Origin: Hyalangium minutum
GTDB lineage: Bacteria; Myxococcota; Myxococcia; Myxococcales; Myxococcaceae
DNA: 64,000 nucleotides
NCBI RefSeq assembly: GCF_000737315.1
Contig: NZ_JMCB01000018.1
Coordinates: forward strand, 177,237-241,236
Direction of reading: 5' to 3'
A model generated the notes under the pieces. The model saw only the letters and a list, made by a program, of their open reading frames with translations, had not been told where the DNA came from and did not search any database. Positions 45,586-58,244 of the stretch are shown here, one piece after another (positions within the stretch are counted from its first letter, which is position 1; each line of letters begins with the position of its first letter). A program made the position numbers and the translations under genes.

Positions 45586-46644
45586 GTGAAGACTCGAGCC
45601 CCACGCCTCCGGCATCTCGCGCTGCTGCTGGCCTCATTGTCCGTCTCGGTGACTCCGGGCTGCATGTCGAGTCCCATGCTCGACTACAGCCTCGACGTGC
45701 CCGCGCAGACGCTGATCCCTCCGGGTGCCCCACCGGTCCAGGAGGGCCGGGCACGCTTCCGGGAGATCTTCTGCGCGCTGCTCGCACGGGAGCCCGGTGC
45801 CGCCGCGCGCCCCTGTGACGCGCTGCTCCATCGCTTGAGTGATGAGCCGCCTTCCTCGCGCCCTCCACGTCCCCTGCCCTCGCATGCTCCAGGGCTGGCG
45901 GTGATCTTCGTCCCTGGGATGCTTGGCGAGTGTGCGTCCGGGCTCGCGCCTCCCTTCGAGGCGGCCGTGCCCCACCTGCGCCGCTTGGGGTATGACGCAC
46001 GGGTCGCCCCGGTGAATGCTTCCGCTCCCAGCCATGCCAATGCCGAGCGCCTCGCCCGAGAGATTGCAGAGAGCCATGCCGAGCGCATCGTCCTCGTCGG
46101 CCATGCCCGGGGAGCGGTGGACATCCTCGAACTCCTCGCGGCGAACCCCGCTGCGGCTTCGCGGGTGCAGGCGGTGCTGAGCGTGGCGGGCGCGATCAAC
46201 GGCTCTCCGCTCGCGGATGCTCCGGCTGGGGCCTCGCTGCTCTTGCCTGGCAAGGGAGACCCCACGTGCACCGAGGGAGAGCGGGCCGCACTCCCGGATC
46301 TCCAGCGCGCCCACCGGTTGCGCTGGCTCATGGAGCACCCGCTTCCCCGGCCGCCGCGCTACTTCTCCCTCGGGGCCTTCTCGCCACGCTCGGACATGGC
46401 AAAGCCCCTGCGTGCCCGAGCCGCCGCGCTGGCACGGATCGATCCGCGCAACGATGGCCTGACGCCGTTCTTCGATCAGATGATCCCGGGCGCCGAGTTG
46501 CTCGGCTACGCGAATGCCGACCATTGGTCCGTCGTGTCCGATTCCCAGGCCCCGGGTCAGCCGCCGTTCCCGCGAGAGGTGCTGATCGAGGCCGCCCTCC
46601 TCCGCATCGTCGAGGCGCTCTCCAGCGGCGAGGCACGCCCATGA
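45586..46644 (+). CDS. Alpha/beta-hydrolase-fold lipoprotein lacking the catalytic Ser (GHARG)
   Basis: Lipobox-like TPGC; paralog of the next gene; the nucleophile elbow reads GHARG, while NDG and ADHW are retained. Confidence 0.75.
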   Translation: MKTRAPRLRHLALLLASLSVSVTPGCMSSPMLDYSLDVPAQTLIPPGAPPVQEGRARFREIFCALLAREPGAAARPCDALLHRLSDEPPSSRPPRPLPSHAPGLAVIFVPGMLGECASGLAPPFEAAVPHLRRLGYDARVAPVNASAPSHANAERLAREIAESHAERIVLVGHARGAVDILELLAANPAAASRVQAVLSVAGAINGSPLADAPAGASLLLPGKGDPTCTEGERAALPDLQRAHRLRWLMEHPLPRPPRYFSLGAFSPRSDMAKPLRARAAALARIDPRNDGLTPFFDQMIPGAELLGYANADHWSVVSDSQAPGQPPFPREVLIEAALLRIVEALSSGEARP

Positions 46645-47702
46645 GCCTCCTCTCCGCTCCCCTGCTGGCCACGCTCGTGGGCATCACGATGGGCCTCACG
46701 GGCTGCGCCACCCCGCTCCTGGCCTACAAGGCCTCCGAGATGCCTCCGCTGCAGCTCGCGGTGGTGGGACAGCCCTCCTTCCAGGATGGGCGGGCACGCT
46801 TCCGGGAGATCTTCTGCGAGCTCGCCGCGCGCGAGGGCCAGCCCGGCGTGGACTGCGAGAAGCTGCTCGTTCGGCTTGCCGCGGAGCCCTCCTCCCAGGC
46901 ACCCGCTTCGCTGCCGTCGCACGATCCGCGCCTGCGCATCCTCCTGGTGCCGGGCGGCTTCGCCGAGTGCTTCAAGGACGCCCCACTCTTCCCAGAGGCC
47001 CAGCCCCGGCTGAAAGCCGCTGGCTACTCGGTGAGTACGATCCCCGTCAGTGGGCGCTCGGGCAGCGCCTACAACGCCTGGCGTATCGCCGTGACGGTCG
47101 CGCGAACCCCCTTGCCTCCGGGTGGCCGGCTCGTGCTGCTGGGCTACTCCAAGGGCATCACGGACATCCTCGAGTTCCTCGTGCAGTACCCGAGCCTCGC
47201 GGCGCGGGTGCACGCGGTGGTCAGCATCGCGGGCAGCGTGAACGGCTCGCCGCTCGCCAACCGCTTCACTCCCCTCTACGAGGCCGCCGACGACTGGGTC
47301 TTGAGAAACTGCCCGCCGGGGGACCGGAACGTCGCGATGGAGCTGAGGCGCGAGCTGCGGCTGAACTGGCTCGCGAGGCACCGGCTGCCAAGCCACATCC
47401 GCTACTTCTCCCTGGGCACCATTGCCCCCGAGGCAGAGGTGGCGCGGGCGATGATGCTCACGGATGACTCGCTGCGGTACGTGGATCCGCTCCGGGACGG
47501 ACAGCTGATCTTCTACGATCAGCTCCTGCCCGGCAGCACGCTGTTGGGCTACATGCGAGCCGACCACTGGGCCGTCGCCCTGCCGCTGCAGGAGCACTGG
47601 CACGTGCTGGCCACGAACTGGGCGGGGACGCACTTCCCTCGGGGCCTGCTGCTGGAGGCCCTCATGCTGCACCTGTCCGAGGCCCTGGGCGACAGCACCT
47701 GA
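46641..47702 (+). CDS. Alpha/beta-hydrolase (lipase-like) lipoprotein
   Basis: Lipobox LTGC; GYSKG nucleophile, RDG and ADHW. ATGA overlap with the upstream paralog. Confidence 0.8.
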   Translation: MSLLSAPLLATLVGITMGLTGCATPLLAYKASEMPPLQLAVVGQPSFQDGRARFREIFCELAAREGQPGVDCEKLLVRLAAEPSSQAPASLPSHDPRLRILLVPGGFAECFKDAPLFPEAQPRLKAAGYSVSTIPVSGRSGSAYNAWRIAVTVARTPLPPGGRLVLLGYSKGITDILEFLVQYPSLAARVHAVVSIAGSVNGSPLANRFTPLYEAADDWVLRNCPPGDRNVAMELRRELRLNWLARHRLPSHIRYFSLGTIAPEAEVARAMMLTDDSLRYVDPLRDGQLIFYDQLLPGSTLLGYMRADHWAVALPLQEHWHVLATNWAGTHFPRGLLLEALMLHLSEALGDST

Positions 47703-47750
47703 GACGTGCCTCGAAGGCAAGGCGGGTCTGAATGGTGAATCCTGCTTTCC

Positions 47751-47778
47751 ACCAAGCCGCTGTTGGCACGGGCTTGGT
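47751..47778 (+). terminator. Hairpin downstream of the hydrolase pair
   Basis: ACCAAGCC...GGCTTGGT 8-bp stem. Confidence 0.35.
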
Positions 47779-47891
47779 TCTCATCCTGAGCACGCACTGA
47801 GGAACCTCCAGGGGCGGCATGGGGTGGGCCCTGAGAATTTCGCCACTTGTGAGCCTGCGCAGTCCCTACTGCGGCTCTGCTCAGGATGAGA
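47779..47891. repeat. 14-bp perfect inverted repeat enclosing 85 nt that contains an internal hairpin
   Basis: TCTCATCCTGAGCA (47779-92) and TGCTCAGGATGAGA (47878-91). Confidence 0.75.
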
Positions 47892-48431
47892 TCCACACCC
47901 GTTGGCAGTTGGCACTGTTGATGCGACACCTTCGCCTGTTGCCGGATGAAGTCACCCAACTGCGCACATCCTAAGGCGAAAAACACATAGGGAGCACCGC
48001 TGTCGTCCATGGGAGTTCTGAGGGAAAAGCCGCTCAGGAGCCGAAAGAATTAACAGTGCAGTATTAGGTGTATCCGTCCGGCGACCGCCGTGCCGGAGCG
48101 CTTGAAGACGGGCGGGGGCTCTTCGCTCGCATCGCCGAACAACTCCGCCAAGTCCCAACTCCCTCCTGACGCCTCGCAGCTCTTTGATAACCTCGACGCC
48201 GACCGGTACGTGCCACTGTCATGACTGCGGGCGCTGCCGCATGTCCATTCGCCACGCGCGGCGCACAGACACCGCCATTGGATGGAGATCTGCCCGGCAC
48301 ATGCCTTCGCGTGACCGATCCGGGCTAGAACTGCCATTGCAGTCAGCCTATGCCAACCGAAGCAAACTGAGTGCTCTGCAAGCGCTAAGACTCTTCTTTA
48401 CAAGTCAATTTAGCGCACGGTGTGATTTATA

Positions 48432-50741
48432 CTACAGGTGAAATTTCCTGGCTAGGCGTTCACATTCAGATGCGGCCATCGGATCATCTGGAAACTCCTC
48501 GCGCCAATCCTTCATCAAGGCAGGTAGCTTTACCCTCACACCGAGCGCTTCGTAGGTGAGGGCGAGTGAGCGGTAGGAGTATCCTCTGAGATCTATGTTC
48601 TCTGGGCTGCTCTTGCTTAAGCCGTCTAGCGCACCCTCAAGATGGGCTTGCGCCTTCAGGAATTCATCTCTCGCTCGCTCGCGATGCATGCCGGCTGCTA
48701 GATCTTTGCCGAGGCGACTTCTGGCTTGGCCTGCAAAAGATCTCAAGGAACTATTGCCCGGCAAGAGATTTAAGCCTTTCTCTGCGGCCTCCGCAGCTTT
48801 AGTCCACTCGTGTTCAGCAAATTCCATCGACACCCAATGCTTATACATCTCTTCATTGCGGTGCTTGAGTTGATACGCGCGCTCGAACTTCTCCCGCGCA
48901 TCGGTGACTCTTCTGGGTTCCCATGCTTTATATACCCAGCCCAAGAATCCAAGCAGGGTGGGGTCGTTGGGGCGTCGCTGCAAAGCCTTTTTGAGAAGAT
49001 CTTCTGCCTTCGCGTGCTCTCGGCTCTTAACCAACAATACCGCTTGGCGGATAGCATCCTGCACTTCTTCGCGCCCAGTTCCTTTGGGGAACTCTCCAGA
49101 AAGCGCTTTGTATGCTCCTTCAACACGCCGCCAGAGGTCAGTTCGAGCATGAACTGTTCTCACTAATGCACGAGTATTAATATTGACTTCATATCTGGGC
49201 TCCCCATCTATGACTCGAGGTTTAGGCACCAAAAAGAGCCGCTGGAGTTCTGCAATTGAGCTTCCAAGAAGATCATCAGCGAATCCAGTGAGACTCTGAA
49301 GCTCCAGAAAAGATGGCGCATGCTTAACCATACATGCTGCAATCAGCACTTCTCGCGCCCTAGGCGAGAGCTTATCAAGCTCTCGGCCCAATGCATATTT
49401 TCTCGCTTCGTCGCCAGAGCGAGTGCGCCACTCGTTAATCGCCTGATGGAGTGGCATGATAGCAGCCAAGCGAATGAGGTCCTCCATATACAGAGGGGAA
49501 GACTCAGTGGCAGAAACAATATCGGCGATAGAATGCGAGGTGAGTTCTTTGACGTCAAGACTCATCATTTGATAGCGAGACTTGATAAAGTCTTCAGCAT
49601 CGTCTTTGCTCAACCCCGTCACTTGGGTAACCGTATGGCCGGTTCCCAGGATTGTTCTGCGGGAAGTTAACAACGCTTTGGATTTTGTCTGAGGAAGCAA
49701 TAGAGTGAAGAATTCGATAGCATCTTCCCCCGCGCCCTCTAGGCTGTCGATATCGTCCACCACGACCAAAGCGGGAAACAAGTTCAAGAGCTCAAGGCAT
49801 CGAGCCCTTTTTGTTTCCAAAGGACGAGAAGCGTCTTCACGCCACCCATAGAGGGTGAGGAGTTTCGAAAGCGCGCTGTCGAGGTTGGAGAAATCCGGCT
49901 CATCTATATTTTGTACTTGCCCTTCTTGAAAGCGCTTGAGCTTGGCACTTAGCCAAATTACTATTTGAAATGGTGCGGGGGCGCGTTTCTTCACTTCTTC
50001 TGCAAAAGCGTAAGCCAATGCAGATTTGCCCTTACCTCCATCGCCAACAAGCACCCATCGGCGGCTCAGTGGATCGTCAAACCACTTTCTGAGTTCATCG
50101 AGTTCGATAGTTCGTCCTACGAAGTCAACAACAATTGTTTCCCGCGGGGGAAGTCGATCTTCCAACGAAGGAGGGATGTCGCTCTCGCTTGCGATAGGCC
50201 TCCCACTCAATTGAGAGCTCAAATGAGCAACCTGCTCTGCCTCCTTTTCAAAGGAAAGTTGAGTCAGAACTCTGCGTGCGCAATCGAGCAAGACAAACGC
50301 ATCTTCAAACGAGAAATCTGTCTCCGCTGGGTGCGAAAGTGGGTCTCGCAGAGCCTTGATGTTTTGCATCCATTGAAGCAGAGCCCGTTTTGACAACTTA
50401 CGCTCATTTGGGTCGAGCGAGCCCACTGAAGGCACAAGCACGTCAAAGTGAACGTCAAAGATGTTGAAGAAGTGATTGACGCCAAGGAGGTCGAACTCGT
50501 CTAGAAGTGGGGCGCTGATTTCTCCTGTCTTTCGTCGTTCCTCGGCAGCGGCTTTTATTCCAGCCCACTCTTTTTGAAAGGGCTGTTGTAGCTTCTTCTG
50601 GAAATCTGTTGGGAACGCCTTGGTAAGTGCGTCGCGAGTATGGCGAACAATTGTATTTCGATAGATTCTTTGAATACCTTCGTAACAGAGCCCGAGATTC
50701 GTCATGGCCACGATTAAATAATGAGGCAGGATTTTGGTCAA
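48432..50741 (-). CDS. HEPN-NB-ARC (STAND ATPase)-winged helix-TPR protein, NLR-like candidate defence protein
   Basis: RDPLSH (RxxxxH, 50331-50348); Walker A GDGGKGKS (50022-50045); Walker B LVVVDD; LLTSRR; C-terminal TPR-like helices. GC is about 50%. The start is TTG 50741 or ATG 50705. Confidence 0.85.
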   Translation of the reverse strand: MTKILPHYLIVAMTNLGLCYEGIQRIYRNTIVRHTRDALTKAFPTDFQKKLQQPFQKEWAGIKAAAEERRKTGEISAPLLDEFDLLGVNHFFNIFDVHFDVLVPSVGSLDPNERKLSKRALLQWMQNIKALRDPLSHPAETDFSFEDAFVLLDCARRVLTQLSFEKEAEQVAHLSSQLSGRPIASESDIPPSLEDRLPPRETIVVDFVGRTIELDELRKWFDDPLSRRWVLVGDGGKGKSALAYAFAEEVKKRAPAPFQIVIWLSAKLKRFQEGQVQNIDEPDFSNLDSALSKLLTLYGWREDASRPLETKRARCLELLNLFPALVVVDDIDSLEGAGEDAIEFFTLLLPQTKSKALLTSRRTILGTGHTVTQVTGLSKDDAEDFIKSRYQMMSLDVKELTSHSIADIVSATESSPLYMEDLIRLAAIMPLHQAINEWRTRSGDEARKYALGRELDKLSPRAREVLIAACMVKHAPSFLELQSLTGFADDLLGSSIAELQRLFLVPKPRVIDGEPRYEVNINTRALVRTVHARTDLWRRVEGAYKALSGEFPKGTGREEVQDAIRQAVLLVKSREHAKAEDLLKKALQRRPNDPTLLGFLGWVYKAWEPRRVTDAREKFERAYQLKHRNEEMYKHWVSMEFAEHEWTKAAEAAEKGLNLLPGNSSLRSFAGQARSRLGKDLAAGMHRERARDEFLKAQAHLEGALDGLSKSSPENIDLRGYSYRSLALTYEALGVRVKLPALMKDWREEFPDDPMAASECERLARKFHL

Positions 50742-50775
50742 GCAGTTAGTCCTACTGTGTCATAAACGTTAGGGC

Positions 50776-50830
50776 TCCCTCGGGAATAGTCGTGTTGGCT
50801 GCTCCGGAGGAGCAGGACATTCCCGAGGGA
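50776..50830. other. Long bulged hairpin upstream of the HEPN-STAND gene
   Basis: TCCCTCGGGAAT/ATTCCCGAGGGA 12-bp perfect stem, plus GTC/GAC and CTGCTC/GAGCAG inner stems. Confidence 0.7.
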
Positions 50831-51189
50831 AAGCCAGGCGTTTGGGACATCGTAGGATTAGCAGGGTTTTGAAAAGGGGCTTGAGGGTCTTCTGACATAC
50901 AACCCATGGGGATGGAGCCTCAACATCATACAATGGGTGCTAGGCCTCTCGAAGTCTGCCTTGAAAATGTTCTGCTCGACACACCAAACTCGTTAGCCGA
51001 CAATGTTTCCCAGGGAGTAACAACGCAGGCATGCGTTAGCGGAGTTCCGGTGCATACAGGGGACGTGTTTTCGGCATCGCAGAGTCCCTCCCCCCAAGGG
51101 AAGGAGCCATGAAACCGGCGCAACTCCAATCCTCGCTGGAGCAGGACAGGTGGTGCCGAACACCCTCTCCGTGCTTTCGTCTCCAAAGA

Positions 51190-52450
51190 CAGGCCTGATT
51201 CAAAGTCAGGGGCTGCGGAGATCAGAAGGTGAGCGAGGTCGGGCATTTGTGCAGGAGGAGGCGCGTCTTGGTGGATACCGTCCGTAGCAGTCGCGGATTC
51301 TGATCGCGCTCCTGGATGTCATCTCAGGTAGGCGACGAGGCCGCTTACCTGTCCGGTTCCCAGTAGGAAAGAGGTGAGCTACAGCGCCCCCCGGGAGAAG
51401 GCGGCGGGATGGAGCTGGCGAGCCCCATCCCCCCAAGTGGCTTCCGCAGGGAAAAGGCGCAGGAGCCGGGAGCAGTGGAGCATGAGTGGAGTGCCAGGAC
51501 AACGGCGGCGCGCGTTGCGCTGGGCCGAGATGGAGTGGAGCCCGGAGTTGGAGGACCCACGGCAGGCGCGGGGCAAGAGGTACGAGCACCACGGGCTGTT
51601 GGGGCTGTTGGGGCTGTTGGTGGCAGCGTTCGCCTGTGGGCTGAAGAGCTTGAGGCGGATGGAGGACTTGGCCACGGACTTGGGAGCGCGCGTGCGCAAG
51701 CGGCTTTCGGTGCCCCAGAAAGTGTCGGACACCACGCTGTGGCGGCTGTTGGCCGGGCAGTCGACGGCGGGGCTGCGGCAGACGGTGGCCGCCCAGGTGC
51801 GCAGGCTGCTCAAGAAGCCAGGGCTGCAGAAAGTGGCGCTGCCAATGGGCGTCATGTCCTTCGATGGCAAGAGCCTGTGGACCAGCCAGCAGCAGCAGGT
51901 GCCCGGGCTGGAGGCGGTGGCCAATGACGAAGCGGGCACGCCGCTGTGGCGCCTGGGAGCGCTGCGGGCGGTGCTCACCCACTTGGTGGCCGCCCCCTGC
52001 GTGGACCTGGAATTCATCGGCGCCAAGGAGGGCGAGAGCCCGGCGTTCCGTCGGTTGCTGCCGCGGGTGGTGAAGACATGGGGCGAGCACTTCCAGGTGC
52101 GACCGCCAGCCATGCCTGCACTCGCGCTCCTCGCTGGAGGTGACGGCCTGGCTGCGAGTGATGGCCTACAACCTGGTGTCGGCTTGGCGTGCGCGGCTGC
52201 CGCTCAAGGACAGGCTGCCAGTGGCCTGGGCTCGCGCCTGCGAGATGCTGCGCGACGCGCTCGTCCACGGTCGCGCGGAGGTGCCCCTGCCCACACTCGC
52301 CTGACGGGTTCGCCGGCCCCTCCGCCTTCTCCCTCATCTCGAACTCACTGCACGGCCGCCCGGCCGAACGGCGCAGCATTGCCTTCGTGCACCCGCTCTC
52401 ATCAGGCTCTACTCACGCGATCGCAGAGGCCTGACTTTGGATCAGGCCTG
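51190..52450 (+). mobile_element. Internally deleted ISAs1-like insertion sequence (1261 bp)
   Basis: 21-bp terminal inverted repeats CAGGCCTGAT(T/C)CAAAGTCAGG (51190-51210 and 52430-52450); 11-bp flanking direct repeats GTCTCCAAAGA/GCCTCCAAAGA; transposase fragments inside. Confidence 0.8.
51482..52304 (+). pseudogene. ISAs1-like DDE transposase with an internal deletion and frameshift at about 52100
   Basis: The N-terminal part (DPR..RGKRY, SDTTLWRLL, SFDGK, GESPAF..LL) ends at GEHFQV. The C-terminal tail (DRQPC..LRVMAYNLV..PTLA*, stop 52302-04) resumes in another frame. Confidence 0.75.
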
Positions 52451-52500
52451 GCCTCCAAAGAGGGTAGGACAGACGGCCCGGGATTTCGTAGGCTGGGGCC

Positions 52501-52770
52501 ATGCTCCAGGGCTCGGGCCGCTGCCACTATCACCCGGATCGCGCGGGGCTCGGCATCTGCGTCGAGTGCCGGCGGGTCATCTGCCGAGAGTGCACCACGC
52601 AGTTCGAGGGCATCAACCGCTGCGCGAGCTGCCTCGAGAAGCGCCTCAAGGTGCTGGAGGGCCCCGCGCAGCGCCAGGAATGGTCGTTCGGCAATGTGGT
52701 GCTCGCGCTGCTGAGCGTGGGCATTGTCTATGGGGGGGTCCGCCTGGCCATCGTGCTGGCGGGTTACTGA
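52501..52770 (+). CDS. Small B-box/zinc-finger-like membrane protein
   Basis: C.YHP...C..C...C..C...C..C pattern plus a C-terminal TM; abuts the next gene. Confidence 0.75.
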   Translation: MLQGSGRCHYHPDRAGLGICVECRRVICRECTTQFEGINRCASCLEKRLKVLEGPAQRQEWSFGNVVLALLSVGIVYGGVRLAIVLAGY

Positions 52771-54657
52771 ATGGCCGTCTCCGCGCTCGAGCTGCGCCCC
52801 CGAGGCGCTGTCGCCATCCTGGATGCCGCCCTGCGGCTGTGCTCGCGCACCACGGGCGTCTGGGCACTCACGCTGCCCGGTGGGGCCCTGGTCACCGCTG
52901 CCCTGCTCCACCTGGCCGACGCGGCGACTCACCGCCAGCCGCTGGCCCTGCCCGCACTGTGGATGACGCTCGCCTGGCTCGCCCGCGGCGTGCTCCAGGG
53001 CGCCACCTGCCACTACTTGCAGGAGCTGCTCTTGGGGCAGAAGGAGCCCGCTGCGCTCTCCAGCCTGCGTGCCGCTCTGGGCCGACTGCCCAGCCTCTTC
53101 GCCACGACGGCCTTCCTGCTCGTCTTCAACACCGCCACGCTCGTCTTCTCGCTGGGGCTCGCCTTCTTCCTGCTGTCCTCTCACATCGTCGGCTACGCGG
53201 TGACGATGCAGGGCAAGGGCAGCCCCCTCCGGCTGTATGGGCTGTGCTCGCGGATGCTGGGACCGGCGCGCGCCAGCGCCACGGGCGTGCGGATGATGCT
53301 GCTGGTGCAGGCGCTGCTCCTGGTCAACCTCCACCTGGCGATCAACGTGCTGTTCTGGCTGGGCCGGACCCTGCTGGGCATCGATCTCACCTTCGCCGAG
53401 CGCTTCGCGTCGATCGACAACCCTTCCTGGTGGCTCTTCATCGTCGCGCTCACCTTCACACTCTTCGAGCCCATCAAGGCGGCCACCTCCACCCTTCTGC
53501 TGGTGGACGGGCGAGTGCGCCAGGAAGGGCTGGATCTGCTCGCCTCGGTGCAACAGCTCCCAGCGCGGAAGAGCCCCGGCTCGGCCCGGAGCGCGGCACT
53601 TGTCTTCCTGTGCGTCCTGCTCGGCGGCACGGCGGCCCGGGCCCAGACCGAGCCCCAGGAAGAGGTGGTGCCGCGCTCGGAGCTTCGCCAGCGCCTGGAG
53701 GCGGTGACCGAGCGCTGCAACGCCGAGGGTGATGGCGTGGAAGAGTCCCTTGAGGCCACGGACTCGCTGAGCCAAGCGGAGGCCATCAAGCTCCAGCGCC
53801 TGCTGCGCAGCGTGGAGCAACTGGCGAACGAGGACGAGGACTGCACAGCGGCGCGAGAGAAGCTGCAGCAAGGCCTGACGCTGGCCCGGCAGACGTCGGA
53901 ACTCGAGCAGGCCCCACCGGACGCGCGGGCCGCCTCCGCGAAGGCCCAGGACATCCTCTCGCGCCCCGAGTTCGCCCAGGCCCCTCCCCCTCCCGAGAAG
54001 GAGGAGCAGGTGAAGGAGGAGTCCGCGCCGCCCGAGGAGTCCGGCTGGTGGAAGGACTTCAAGGACTGGCTGAAGAAGATGCTCAAGAAGCTCTTCGAGC
54101 CAGATCCCGACCGCAAGCCGCCTCCCCGGCGTGCCGACTTTGCGCCCTCGACGGGCATGAGCGGTGCCAACGTCATCGTGGTCCTCGGCATCGCGCTGAC
54201 GGTGGTGGTGCTGGCGGCCGTGCTCATCCGCGCCCTGGGCCGCCGGCAGAAAGAGGAGACCGCGCAGCTCGAGGTGAGCACGCTGGACGCGAAGGCGCTC
54301 GCGAACGACGAGCTGAGCGCCCTGGCCCGCCCGCCAGAGGGCTGGGCCCACCTGGCTGACGAGCTGGCCGCCAAGGGCGAGTACCGCGAGGCGGTGCGCA
54401 GCCTCTACCTGGCGCTGCTGTCCCGGCTGCACCGCGAGGGCGCCATCCTCTATGACTCCACGCTGAGCAACTGGGACTACCTGCGCCACTTCAAGGGCCG
54501 CCGGGACTGGCTGCCGCCCTTCCGCGAGCTGACGCGCCGCTTCGACTTCGCCTGGTACGGCAACCTGCCGGTGGGGGCTCAGGGCTACCAGGACTTCCGC
54601 GCCCTCACGCAGCCGCTGCTCAACGCGCCCGCGCAGCTGGAGGCCCCCGGTGCGTGA
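52771..54657 (+). CDS. DUF4129-domain membrane protein
   Basis: Multi-TM N-terminus; C-terminal YREAVRSLYLA..TLSNWDY..LTRRFDFAWYG. Confidence 0.8.
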   Translation: MAVSALELRPRGAVAILDAALRLCSRTTGVWALTLPGGALVTAALLHLADAATHRQPLALPALWMTLAWLARGVLQGATCHYLQELLLGQKEPAALSSLRAALGRLPSLFATTAFLLVFNTATLVFSLGLAFFLLSSHIVGYAVTMQGKGSPLRLYGLCSRMLGPARASATGVRMMLLVQALLLVNLHLAINVLFWLGRTLLGIDLTFAERFASIDNPSWWLFIVALTFTLFEPIKAATSTLLLVDGRVRQEGLDLLASVQQLPARKSPGSARSAALVFLCVLLGGTAARAQTEPQEEVVPRSELRQRLEAVTERCNAEGDGVEESLEATDSLSQAEAIKLQRLLRSVEQLANEDEDCTAAREKLQQGLTLARQTSELEQAPPDARAASAKAQDILSRPEFAQAPPPPEKEEQVKEESAPPEESGWWKDFKDWLKKMLKKLFEPDPDRKPPPRRADFAPSTGMSGANVIVVLGIALTVVVLAAVLIRALGRRQKEETAQLEVSTLDAKALANDELSALARPPEGWAHLADELAAKGEYREAVRSLYLALLSRLHREGAILYDSTLSNWDYLRHFKGRRDWLPPFRELTRRFDFAWYGNLPVGAQGYQDFRALTQPLLNAPAQLEAPGA

Positions 54658-55942
54658 TCGTTTCCCCCTGCTCGTCGTGGGTGGACTGGTGCTCGTGGCA
54701 CTGCTGGGCAACCTCCTGCTGAAGGGGGCCTCTCGCAGCGGGTTCGCGGACGTCCTGTCCACGTACCGGGCCTCGGAGGGCGGCGCGAGGGCGCTCTACC
54801 TGCTGCTCCAGGAGAGCGGCCTGCCCGTGGTCCGGCGCTCCTCGGATCTCCAGGTGATGGACAAGGACTCCTCCGCCACGGTGGTGCTGCTGGCGGTGGA
54901 CGTGAGCGGCTCGCGCGAGGACGACCCGGACGAGACGATGCTCGCCGTCGATCGCGGCGATGACTTGTCGAGCGAGGACGTGCCCAGCGAGGGCCTCAAC
55001 TTCCTCAAGGCCCAGCGGCTGAGCGAGGACGAGCGCGAGAAGCTGATCGAACACGTGAAGGCGGGACACTCGCTCGTGTACGTGGTGTGGGGCTCGCGGG
55101 AGAACCCGCTCCTGGACGCGATGAAGGTGAAGCTGTCCAAGGTGGACACCTCGCTGCCCATGCGCACGCTCGTGCCTCCGCTGTCCACGCCGTACACATT
55201 GGGCGTGGAGCGCGTGGAGGCCAAGGTGCAGTCCTTCCTGGAGCTTCCCTCGGACGCGGTGCCCGTGCTGCAGGACGCGCAGCTGGAGCAACCGGTGGCG
55301 GCGGTGGTACCGCTGGGCCTGGGCAAGGTGCTGGTGGTGGGCGCCCCCGAGCTGGCGATGAACCAGGCGCTCGCACGCGCGGACAACGCGCAGTTCTGGC
55401 TGAGCACCCTGCGCGCCCTGGGCCCCGGGCCCTATGAGTTCAGTGAGTTCCACCACGGCTTCACCGACCAGCGATCGATCATCGACTTCGCGCGGCGCTA
55501 TGGCCTGCAGTTCGCGGTGGCGCAGCTGCTGCTCGGGCTGGGGCTGTGGTCCATCTCGCTCAAGCGCTTCGGCCGCCCGCGCCCACCGCCCGAGTCCGTC
55601 CGCGTGGGCGCCACGGATGCCCTCTTCGCCATGAGCCGCCTCTACCGCGAGGGCGGCCACCAGCCGTTCGCCGCCGGGCTGATTGCCAAGGGGCTGACGC
55701 AGGACCTGGCCATCTACGCCGGGCTGCCCGCGCACTCCTCCGCGCCGGCCGTGGCCGAGGGGCTGCTGGCGCGCAGCCGGGAGGATCTGTCCCAGGGTCT
55801 GCGGGCCATCGTGCGCCGCGCCGAGGAGACGAAGAGCGACAAGGATCTCCAGCAGCTGGCCGCGCGCGCCGCCGAGCTGCGCAACCGCATCCATCCCACC
55901 GGGCGATTGCACGCGCCCACCGCATCCGCCGAGGAGTCATGA
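54650..55942 (+). CDS. DUF4350-domain protein
   Basis: STYR...[26 protein letters not shown] and KRFGRP motifs; position in the operon. Confidence 0.75.
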
Positions 55943-56940
55943 CCGTTCCATCCGTCCCCGCCCCTTCCTTCGCCCAGCCGGGCAACGTGGTGCAGGCAGC
56001 CAATGCGATCCGCGAGGGCGTGTTGAGCGAGGTGCGCAAGGCCGTCGTTGGCCAGGACGAGGCGCTGGAGCTGATGCTCTGCGGCCTCATCGCCGGCGGC
56101 CATGTGCTGCTGGAGGGCGTGCCGGGCGTGGCCAAGACGCTGATGGCCAAGGCGCTGGCGCGCAGCGTGAGCGCGGACTTCAAGCGCATCCAGTTCACGC
56201 CGGACCTGATGCCCGCGGACATCCTGGGCACCAGCATCTTCGACTTGAAGTCCCAGGCCTTCGTGCTGGTGCGAGGGCCGATCTTCACGGACCTGCTGCT
56301 GGCGGACGAGATCAACCGCGCTCCGGCGAAGACGCAGTCCGCGCTCCTGGAGGCGATGCAGGAGCGCGCCGTGTCGCTGGAGGGCCGCAACATCACGCTC
56401 TCTCCCCTCTTCACGGTGTTCGCCACGCAGAACCCGGTGGAGTCCGAGGGCACGTACCCGCTGCCAGAGGCGCAGCTCGACCGCTTCCTGTTCAAGATCG
56501 AGGTGGGCTACCCGGCGCCCGAGGAGGAGGACGCGATCCTCGCGTCGGTGAACCGTGGCTTCGACGCGGGAGACCTGGCGCGCGCGGGCGTGGGGGCGGC
56601 GGTGGCGAAGGAGGGGCTGCTGGGGGCTCGGACGGCGATGAACGAGGTGACGGTGGAGCCGCCGGTGCTCTCGTACATCCGCAAGCTGGTGTCGGCCACG
56701 CGCAGCTCCAGCCGCATCCGTCTGGGCGCGGGGCCTCGCGCGGCGGTGCACCTGCTGATGGCGGCCAAGGCGCTGGCGGCGCTGCGAGGCCGGGGCTTCG
56801 TGACACCGGATGACGTGCGCTTCCTGGCGAACCCCGTGCTCAAGCACCGGCTGCTGCTGTCGCCGGAGGCGGAGCTGGACGGAGCCACGCCCACGGATGC
56901 ACTGCGCGAGGTGGTTCAGTCCGTCGAGGTTCCCCGGTGA
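55939..56940 (+). CDS. MoxR-family AAA+ ATPase
   Basis: [63 protein letters not shown]. Start at ATG 55939. Confidence 0.95.
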
Positions 56941-58244
56941 TACCGACCACGCGCCTGTGGGCGCTGCTCGCCCTGCTGGCGCTGCCGATGATGGCGGCGG
57001 GCTTCTCTCCGGGGCTGGGCGGGCTCGTGCTCGCGCTGGACGTGCTGGTGCTGGGACTGGCGGCGGTGGACTTCCTGATGGCGCGCCGGGCGCGGCTCGA
57101 GGTGCAACGGAAGCTGCCCTCGAAGCTGTCGGTGGGCGTGGCGAACCGGGTGGAGGTGCTGCTGATCCACCGCTCCAGCCAGGCGGTGCAGGTGCGCGTG
57201 CGAGACGACGTGCCGGACGGCTTCACCGCGACACCGGAGGAGGCACCGCTGCAACTGCCACCGGAGAGCCAGACGCGGTGGGTGTACCGGGTGACGCCGA
57301 CGAAGCGCGGCAAGTTCTCCTTTGGCGACGTGCACGTGCGGGTGCAGGGGCCATTGGGGCTGGTGTTTCACGAGCGCGCATTCAAGGTGGGCGAGGCGGC
57401 CTCGGTGTTCCCGGATCTGCGGGGAGCGAGCCGGCTGCTGCTCTCGGGGGCCGCGCTGGACCTGGTGAACCTGGGCCTGCGCCAGCTGCGGCGGGACGGC
57501 AGAGGGAGCGAGTTCGCGCGCCTGCGTGACTACGCGCAGGGAGACTCGGTACGCGAGGTGGACTGGAAGGCCACGGCACGCCGGAACAAGCCGGTGACGC
57601 GGGTGATGGAGTCCGAGCGCTCGCAGTCCATCCTCATCTGCGTGGATGCGGGGCGCTCAATGGCGGCGCAGGTGGACGGGCTGACGAAGCTGGACCACGC
57701 GGTGAACGCAGCGCTCTTCCTGGCTTTCGTGGCGGTGAAGAATGGAGACCGGGTCGGGCTGGTGGTGTTCGCGGACGGGGTGAAGGCGTACCTGGCGCCA
57801 GCGGCGGGCCGTGGGCAGTACCGGAAGATCGTGGACGCGCTGTACTCGGCGACGCCGAGCCTCACGTACGTGGACTACCTGGCGCTCTTCAAGGAGCTGA
57901 ACCTCCGGCTGACACGGCGGAGCCTACTGTGTGTCTTCACGGACTTCCTGGACGAGGAGCAGGCTTCGACGATGATCGATCCGCTGCACCGGCTGGCGCG
58001 ACGCCACGTGCCGCTGTGCCTGTCGGTGAAGGACTCGGCGCTGCTGGGACTGCTGCGCCGGCCACCGCCCGGACCGGAAGAGGCGTTCCAGCACGCGGTG
58101 GCCTCGGAGCTGCTGATGGACCGCGAGCTGCTCAAGGCCAAGGTGAGCATGGGCGGGGTGCAGATGATCGACGTGCAGCCCGACGAGCTGAGCCTGGCGG
58201 CGGTGAACCGTTACCTGGACATCAAGGCGCGCGGAGTGCTGTAG
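56937..58244 (+). CDS. DUF58-domain (VWA-like) protein
   Basis: [26 protein letters not shown] and DAGRSM. Confidence 0.9.

Follow-up and report, generated by a model that had tools for sequence, protein, structure and literature searches.

Avs proteins are STAND sensors whose mechanism is established, in that they oligomerize to activate their N-terminal effectors (Gao et al. 2022). A survey of 589 STAND clades, in which only post-NTPase sensors of at least 400 aa were clustered, named Avs7, Avs8, and Avs10-24 (Lee et al. 2026, PMC13581612), and the names Avs6 and Avs9 come from Legrand et al. 2025 (PMC12680541). Bacterial NACHT proteins include HEPN domains in their range of RNase effectors (Kibby et al.). 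Moreover, Anantharaman et al. 2013 (PMC3710099) described bacterial proteins with an N-terminal HEPN domain and a STAND module as reminiscent of animal HEPN-NACHT proteins, and listed fusions of Swt1-like HEPN domains to STAND-ATPase, TPR, and S1 domains as mostly active (their Table 1). Here, we analyzed a gene on the minus strand of a 64,000-nucleotide stretch of Hyalangium minutum DNA (assembly GCA_000737315.1, contig JMCB01000018.1; RefSeq NZ_JMCB01000018.1), which we call the window and to which all unmarked positions refer. We found that this gene, at 48432-50705, is intact and horizontally acquired, and that it codes for a bacterial NLR-like protein (the window protein) with a predicted HEPN RNase, an NB-ARC ATPase switch, and a short TPR sensor. 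By analogy with the described systems, the protein is probably a stand-alone, mobile sensor of the Avs type, in which an infection cue would lead through oligomerization to HEPN RNase activity and abortive infection.

Proteins of this general kind, the bacterial NLR-like or Avs-type single-gene systems, are already known, and it is the HEPN effector, the NB-ARC-clade switch, and the short sensor that are less common. Like Avs and other bacterial NLR-like proteins (PMC13581612), the window protein combines in one chain an effector at the N-terminus, a STAND NTPase, and a TPR-like sensor at the C-terminus; its effector is swappable, and its gene is mobile, GC-poor, and sometimes found in defense or mobile-element regions. 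It differs from them in having a fold nearest to eukaryotic NB-ARC proteins, a predicted HEPN effector, and a TPR sensor of just ~215 aa. With the proteins listed in 2013, compared by their description, it shares the HEPN subfamily, the partner domains, and the predicted activity, whereas some of those proteins, which are themselves predictions only, carry an S1/cold-shock RNA-binding domain that is absent from the window protein. An earlier note on this DNA had not recognized the architecture as a named system and had proposed PADLOC as a check. PADLOC v2, which includes the AVAST types, returned only spurious weak matches for the window protein (mad8, E 8e-4; PprDinG, E 3e-3) and no match for four other HEPN-bearing relatives, and NCBIfam gave partial TPR or P-loop matches to the window protein far below the cut-offs. 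PADLOC v2 thus gave no convincing match to a named system. The novelty is nevertheless smaller than the note had thought, because fusions of Swt1-type HEPN, STAND, and TPR domains were already listed in 2013.

An intact, horizontally acquired NLR-like gene

The locus contains a single long open reading frame (ORF) with homologues, which runs on the minus strand over 48432-50741 and comprises 769 codons when read from a TTG. In an alignment of 29 full-length homologues with 47-73% identity to the window protein, which also served to score the conservation of motifs, the N-termini read MTNLGLCYEG or nearly so, matching an internal ATG at 50705. DNA similarity to the nearest copy, in Corallococcus exercitus, spans 48541-50706 and ends at the same ATG. 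We therefore took the gene as 48432-50705. Translation most likely begins at the 50705 ATG and not at the TTG at 50741 with which the gene had at first been delimited, so that the product has 757 aa, followed by the stop codon. Homologous sequences form 491 clusters at 90% identity, matched over their full length (best E = 0) and far beyond chance; nearly all are ~755-785 aa long, making this a tight full-length family. A chance ORF or a pseudogene was ruled out, given the full length and the retention of all invariant residues.

Pfam, the alignment, and the AlphaFold2 (AF2) models agree on the order of effector, STAND module, and sensor that had been read from the translation. An N-terminal all-helical domain (aa 1-165; 50211-50705) is followed by a linker (aa 166-194; 50124-50210), a nucleotide-binding domain (aa 195-365; 49611-50123), helical domain 1 with a winged-helix domain (aa 366-540; 49086-49610), and a C-terminal TPR-like solenoid (aa 541-757; 48435-49085). 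Mean pairwise identity among homologues is 0.49 in the HEPN part, 0.60 in the nucleotide-binding domain, 0.49 in the helical and winged-helix domains, and 0.44 in the TPR part, and by these sequence comparisons all domains are under similar purifying selection.

The switch is recognized by Pfam as NB-ARC (aa 218-428; 25.3 bits against a cut-off of 23.5) and as AAA_16 (33.9 bits against 32.6). Its Walker A motif, G221-DGGKGK-S228 (GDGGKGKS, aa 221-228), has invariant key residues, and in the Walker B motif, LVVVDD at 313-318, both D317 and D318 are invariant. The sensor-1 motif TSRR (347-350) is invariant as well, as is a GxP-like motif, S403-P404-L405, in helical domain 1 (GSPLY in the consensus). 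L487, P496, R504, and N510 are the invariant residues of the winged-helix region, in which a conserved MHD-type histidine was not found in the 29-homologue alignment. The description of the NB-ARC motifs as complete was therefore slightly overstated, although Walker A, Walker B, sensor-1, and the GxP-like motif all stand. The full-length AF2 model, with a mean predicted local distance difference test (pLDDT) score of 87.3, comprises an alpha/beta nucleotide-binding domain, a helical domain, a winged helix, and a helical C-terminus; the winged helix, also anticipated by the note, is formed in the model by helices at 466-489 and a beta-hairpin at 497-504.

When this model was compared with the PDB by Foldseek, the top ranks were taken by wheat Sr35, CED-4, NRC3/NRC4, ZAR1, Apaf-1, RPP1, and Roq1 (E 5e-10 to 1e-6), with alignments to CED-4 and Apaf-1 that span ~500 columns; no bacterial Avs structure was among the best 50 matches listed. 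Since plant CNLs, CED-4, and Apaf-1 head the ranking, the switch is of the AP-ATPase/NB-ARC type among STAND modules. The core of nucleotide-binding domain, helical domain 1, and winged-helix domain found in Apaf-1, CED-4, and the plant CNL and TNL resistosomes is thus the best structural match, and the Walker A, Walker B, sensor-1, and GxP-like motifs occur on both sides of the comparison. In contrast, the window protein is just 12-16% identical to them in sequence, its winged-helix region revealed no conserved MHD histidine, its sensor is made of TPRs where theirs is made of WD40 or leucine-rich repeats, and its effector is a predicted enzyme where theirs is a CARD, coiled-coil, or TIR domain. 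SAMD9 was also among the Foldseek matches (E 1e-6). Avs9 and SAMD9 (PMC12680541) resemble the window protein as STAND-TPR proteins with a predicted RNase output that kills or arrests the cell. They are, however, much larger (structural similarity over more than 1,300-1,400 aa), and they have an AlbA_2 effector in place of HEPN as well as SIR2-like and OB domains.

The predicted sensor is a solenoid of ~11 helices. In the AF2 model, eleven antiparallel helices at 545-754 make up ~5.5 TPRs, in agreement with the TPRs first proposed for this region. Pfam TPR families match at 553-620, each below its cut-off, and there is a weak match to TPR-S (PF20308) in the same solenoid. A profile search of the PDB found a designed TPR protein and the TPR domain of PEX5 at E 9e-6 to 1e-4, along with weak IFIT matches; run over the full length of the protein, it gave only TPR proteins and weak P-loop matches, and no Avs.

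The gene stands out from its surroundings in composition. Its GC content is 0.509 against 0.685 in the flanks, as had been stated in rounded figures, and the GC profile falls to ~0.49-0.55 over ~48250-51000, within a low-GC stretch (~0.49-0.60) at 47750-51250 that holds this single gene and is bordered on both sides by DNA of ~0.69-0.71. The same holds across the family, the gene being GC-poorer than its flanks in all 58 loci with enough flanking sequence (mean difference -9.3 points, range -2 to -28). We also compared all ORFs within 4 kb of the gene in 59 loci against each other. No neighbor family occurred in more than five loci, and the recurrent neighbors were limited to transposases (IS3-, IS630-, and IS110-type) and a serine recombinase. 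With no recurring partner, the gene must work, if at all, alone, which bears out the stand-alone nature ascribed to it. In addition, DNA homology between the window and Corallococcus is confined to the coding sequence, so that the gene is not traveling with a fixed element.

The predicted Swt1-like HEPN effector

HEPN domains are recognized by an Rx4-6H motif with a polar residue (N, D, or H) directly after the arginine (PMC3710099). The intact RxxxxH motif reported for the window protein is R120-D-P-L-S-H125 (50331-50348), which comprises the predicted catalytic residues and is invariant in 29 of the 29 aligned homologues, including the aspartate right after the arginine. Two database searches yielded 220 copies of the domain, of which 205 have Rx4H, 13 have Rx5H (RDPVLGHP), and 2 lack the motif. 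Variation between Rx4H and Rx5H, together with the polar residue, places the family inside the HEPN range.

The Pfam family HEPN_Swt1 (PF18731) gave sub-threshold matches in 11 of 22 family members, with a best E of 1.6e-4. It was by far the most frequent Pfam family among the members, and several of the matches cover nearly the whole of the 115-position model. A plurality consensus of 106 representatives matched it at E 8.1e-6. In the AF2 model of the N-terminal domain (pLDDT 89.3), which is all-helical, the helices lie at 3-30, 47-59, 99-120, and 133-149, with residues 60-98 inserted after the second core helix and before the third. The motif falls at the end of the long helix 99-120, which closes with R120, and at the start of the loop leading to helix 133-149. 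Judged from secondary structure and helix order, the predicted topology fits the published HEPN arrangement (PMC3710099). Together, the near-threshold PF18731 matches, the motif, and the modeled topology make it likely that the N-terminal domain is a Swt1-like HEPN domain and a predicted RNase effector. The assignment made in the earlier note is thereby supported at near-threshold level, short of proof.

Defense HEPN RNases are generally activated by dimerization or by ligand binding. The window domain has in common with Cas13, Csm6/Csx1, RloC/PrrC, RnlA/LsoA, ApeA, and the CBS-HEPN protein of DS-11 the Rx4-6H motif of metal-independent RNases (PMC3710099, PMC13092281). These RNases are not known to be gated by an NB-ARC STAND switch, as is predicted for the window domain, and beyond the motif they have no sequence or Foldseek similarity to it that we could detect.

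Family, effector exchange, and genomic contexts

Out of 1.84 billion representatives, a profile of the N-terminal domain retrieved only 325 clusters (50% identity), mostly with the same architecture or fragments of it. About 65 full-length copies were found in a pattern scan of one genome per species. Their hosts are distributed patchily over at least six phyla: Myxococcota, Acidobacteriota, Chloroflexota (Dehalococcoidia), Planctomycetota, Actinomycetota (Micromonospora, Mycobacterium mantenii, Knoellia, and Rothia), and Cyanobacteria (Microcoleus). A partial homologue also occurs on a 2.6 kb contig of a Nitrososphaera metagenome-assembled genome (MAG; L051), which could be a true transfer or a binning error.

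Several proteins carry the HEPN-like domain in other arrangements. In the metagenomic proteins P0122 and P0130, a tandem pair of HEPN-like domains precedes the STAND module, the first copy having Rx5H (RDPVLGHP) and the second also reading as Rx5H (RGALIAHP). An OmpR-type winged helix-turn-helix domain (Trans_reg_C) stands in front of the HEPN-like domain in P0169, and a coiled-coil region of ~370 aa does so in P0170, P0176, and P0183. The domain is joined to a different NB-ARC module with TPR_10/12 repeats in P0242, and to transmembrane proteins with Sel1 or FG-GAP repeats in P0153 and P0168.

The pattern scan also brought up a sister family of ~840 aa, which has a Schlafen/AlbA_2 (SLFN_AlbA_2) N-terminus on a homologous STAND-TPR chassis. 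It is hosted by Pseudomonas and Stutzerimonas (loci L077, L079, L081, L082, and L085), Halomonas jincaotanensis (L075 5365-7878), Paraglaciecola, and some Dehalococcoidia, and similar STAND parts are present on Rhizobium plasmids. Sister proteins align with the window protein from aa 181 to 628 at 30% identity (463 aa alignment, E 2e-56), beginning at a conserved LExxLP motif in the linker of which L181, L185, and P186 are invariant, and this linker is thus the junction at which effectors are swapped. The two families share the domain order and the LExxLP junction, and homology covers the STAND module and the first TPRs, whereas the N-terminus is Schlafen/AlbA_2 in one and HEPN in the other, and the last ~110-130 aa of the sensor cannot be aligned. 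Exchange of HEPN for Schlafen on a shared STAND-TPR chassis is the behavior expected of an effector position, and effector swapping of this sort is typical of conflict systems. Two sister proteins compared with PADLOC v2 gave nothing credible. We considered and ruled out two other assignments: the sister family is not Avs9/SAMD9-like, given the far greater size of those proteins and their SIR2-like and OB domains, and a BTAD/SARP regulator was discarded because the N-terminus of the window protein has no BTAD match. Halomonas jincaotanensis is also the source of an Avs tested by Lee et al. 2026 (PMC13581612), which could be the L075 sister protein.

We examined 11 Pfam-annotated contexts of the family. 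Insertion sequence (IS) elements or integrases were present in ~7 of them, a defense-type neighbor in 3, and a prophage in 1. One copy is separated by 61 bp from a TIR-domain gene and has IS110 and integrases in its surroundings. Another (L007 2273-9951) directly follows genes for an N6_N4 methylase (905 aa) and a ResIII helicase (1062 aa), with a HipA_2 and DUF3037 pair at 6 kb and an integrase nearby. This pair has a partial likeness to DS-6, a validated defense system made of a HipA-related kinase and a partner, in that the DS-6 partner carries DUF1829 in addition to DUF3037 (PMC13092281). Of the remaining copies, one has IS elements on both sides and an HsdR gene at 5.6 kb, two have only IS elements for company, and one is found amid toxin-antitoxin genes (Fic and PIN) and a gene for a PDDEXK_9 ATPase. 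In a MAG of Terriglobia (L002 10001-12292), the homologue is inside a prophage tail region, with head and tail-tube genes on one side. Large unannotated genes lie on the other side of that copy, a typical moron position. Together, these contexts are suggestive and fit a mobile defense gene, with evidence that is mixed. A tblastn search of plasmids with the HEPN consensus, aimed at annotated Swt1-HEPN genes, gave nothing useful.

At the window locus, an IS-like element of 1.26 kb (51190-52450, plus strand) sits 485 bp upstream of the gene start. It has terminal inverted repeats of 21 bp at 51190-51210 and 52430-52450, which are 95% complementary, and is bordered by a 9-bp direct repeat, CTCCAAAGA, at 51181-51189 and 52453-52461, corresponding to the target duplication. 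An inner plus-strand ORF from 51374 matches DDE_Tnp_1_assoc marginally (32.9 bits against a cut-off of 32.3); it had no NCBIfam transposase match and no match by tblastn against plasmids, and the NCBI annotation has a 244-aa ORF on the opposite strand instead. The GC content of the element is high, as in the host genome. From its repeats, the target duplication, and the marginal transposase match, we take 51190-52450 to be an IS or IS-derived element, in line with the IS that had been noted next to the gene.

The window copy also neighbors a MoxR/DUF58/DUF4350/DUF4129 operon, a pair of lipoprotein-like paralogues, and the gene for a prolyl oligopeptidase. The operon (~52501-58200; L008 2498-8241) encodes DUF4129 and DUF4350 proteins, a MoxR-type AAA ATPase (bpMoxR/AAA_3), and a DUF58/VWA protein, and looks like an ordinary cluster with no link to the HEPN-STAND gene. 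The paralogues, at 45586-46644 and 46641-47702 on the plus strand, are adjacent, encode 352 and 353 aa with 42.6% identity and lipoprotein-like N-termini, and are convergent with the HEPN-STAND gene; they had no family match and no relatives near other copies. Two ORFs co-directional with the gene, at 48050-48337 and 47549-48010, were rejected as operon partners, having no family match and not being conserved beside homologues. As neither these ORFs nor the convergent paralogues are conserved beside other copies, the gene has no operon partner. An inverted repeat (47768-47792 and 47878-47902; 25-nt arms, 88% complementary, 85-nt spacer) lies in an intergenic stretch of intermediate GC content downstream of the gene. 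Rfam gave only a chance microRNA match over 47000-52600, no tRNA was found in the window, promoter and terminator scans did not rise above background, and NCBIfam found nothing in the flanking ORFs.

Proposed mechanism and competing explanations

Domain order, motifs, an NB-ARC-type fold, foreign origin, single-gene nature, and the exchange of effectors are directly supported for this family. The events that would connect them, namely the trigger, oligomerization, RNase activity, and a defense phenotype, we infer by analogy. HEPN nucleases generally act as dimers that form a composite active site, so that bringing HEPN domains into proximity would switch on RNA cleavage. In the resting state, the NB-ARC module would presumably be ADP-bound and monomeric, with its single HEPN domain inactive. 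The C-terminal TPR solenoid would then bind an infection cue, most likely a phage protein, and binding would lead to nucleotide exchange and NB-ARC oligomerization, as in Apaf-1, CED-4, the plant resistosomes, and Avs tetramers. Oligomerization would bring the HEPN domains together into a dimer with a composite Rx4H active site, and the activated, metal-independent RNase may cut cellular RNA, phage RNA, or both (tRNA, rRNA, or mRNA), which would stop translation and abort the infection. HEPN proteins have been described as typically dimeric ribonucleases (PMC13092281), and the tandem-HEPN variants P0122 and P0130 fit a logic of dimerization, as in other HEPN nucleases.

A number of results weigh against a phage-sensing HEPN RNase. 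We found no match by tblastn to 50,697 phage records, and on plasmids tblastn with the window protein matched the STAND part only, on proteins with other N-termini. No known defense gene lies within 10 kb of the window copy, which is not in a defense island, and three or four of the 11 contexts examined are ordinary metabolic or housekeeping neighborhoods. The sensor is short, with ~215 aa of TPR, whereas the characterized Avs sensors that wrap phage proteins have at least 400 aa. No experimental paper on a HEPN-NB-ARC-TPR protein was found in the literature searched. As for the effector, the consensus match to HEPN_Swt1 (26.6 bits) falls 0.9 bit short of the Pfam gathering score of 27.5, and the first 187 residues of the window protein alone gave no Pfam match. 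Foldseek with the N-terminal model returned generic helical bundles and no HEPN (best E 0.33 in the PDB and 1.2 in BFVD), a result that neither confirms nor excludes the fold, since Foldseek is weak on small helical bundles.

Some of these points would suit a signaling STAND ATPase outside immunity, with an AfsR/MalT-type switch that perceives an endogenous or environmental cue through its TPRs and a HEPN domain that carries out regulated RNA decay in a stress response, dormancy, or the developmental cell death of social soil bacteria. Several copies have housekeeping or metabolic genes for neighbors, most hosts are large-genome soil bacteria, the short TPR sensor has stayed well conserved from phylum to phylum, and the OmpR-type Trans_reg_C domain in front of P0169 recalls the AfsR/SARP layout. 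A gene that is foreign in GC content in 58 of 58 loci, patchily distributed, and without a conserved neighborhood does not behave like a resident regulator of this sort, and neither do its frequent association with IS elements, its copies in a prophage and beside restriction-modification or TIR genes, or the Schlafen-type effector swap of its sister family. We therefore regard a role of this kind as unlikely.

The shortness and conservation of the sensor also allow a variant of the immune reading that we hold to be doubtful, in which a compact NLR with a TPR part of ~215 aa reads a small or conserved cue rather than a large phage structural protein, and the HEPN RNase answers. Candidate cues would be a peptide motif, an RNA end (there are weak PEX5 and IFIT profile matches), or a guarded host factor. 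If true, this would be the first characterized HEPN-armed NB-ARC immune switch in bacteria, and a counterpart in prokaryotes to the animal HEPN-NACHT proteins (CXorf38-like), which were predicted in 2013.

Alternatively, the architecture may be right and the N-terminal domain something other than an active HEPN RNase, such as an adaptor or oligomerization domain, an RNA-binding domain that does not cleave, or a different enzymatic fold. The missing Foldseek match and the sub-threshold Pfam scores would be expected in that case, as would the outcome of a sequence profile search of the PDB with the N-terminus, which found only a chance match to a terminase (E 0.39); eukaryotic Swt1 HEPN domains are, moreover, thought to be inactive (PMC3710099). 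Against this stand the invariant arginine, aspartate, and histidine, the Rx4H-to-Rx5H variation within the HEPN range, the position of the motif where the fold would place it, the predominance of HEPN_Swt1 among the Pfam matches with coverage of nearly the whole model, and the tandem-domain variants, for which other HEPN nucleases offer parallels. On balance, we find an inactive or different domain quite improbable. Least probable of all is that the gene is selfish, toxin-type cargo of mobile elements that serves addiction or inter-element exclusion rather than host defense. IS elements and recombinases do often flank it, one copy is prophage-borne, and toxin-antitoxin genes are near in some loci, but no antitoxin or partner gene recurs, the homology with Corallococcus is restricted to the coding sequence, and a STAND module with a sensor implies ligand-gated, not constitutive, toxicity.

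A mobile, single-gene immune sensor with a HEPN output would overturn nothing, the architecture having been predicted in 2013 and the general Avs mechanism being established. If confirmed, it would bring a HEPN RNase to the set of outputs known from experiments on bacterial STAND/NLR-like sensors, and this output would be carried by an NB-ARC chassis that, among solved folds, comes closest to Apaf-1, CED-4, and the plant resistosomes. The unusually small sensor could ease the mapping of triggers and structural work, and the natural swap between HEPN and Schlafen on one chassis is a ready comparison of two RNase effectors. The finding would also extend to host phyla that E. coli-centered defense screens cover thinly, namely Myxococcota, Acidobacteriota, Chloroflexota, and Planctomycetota.

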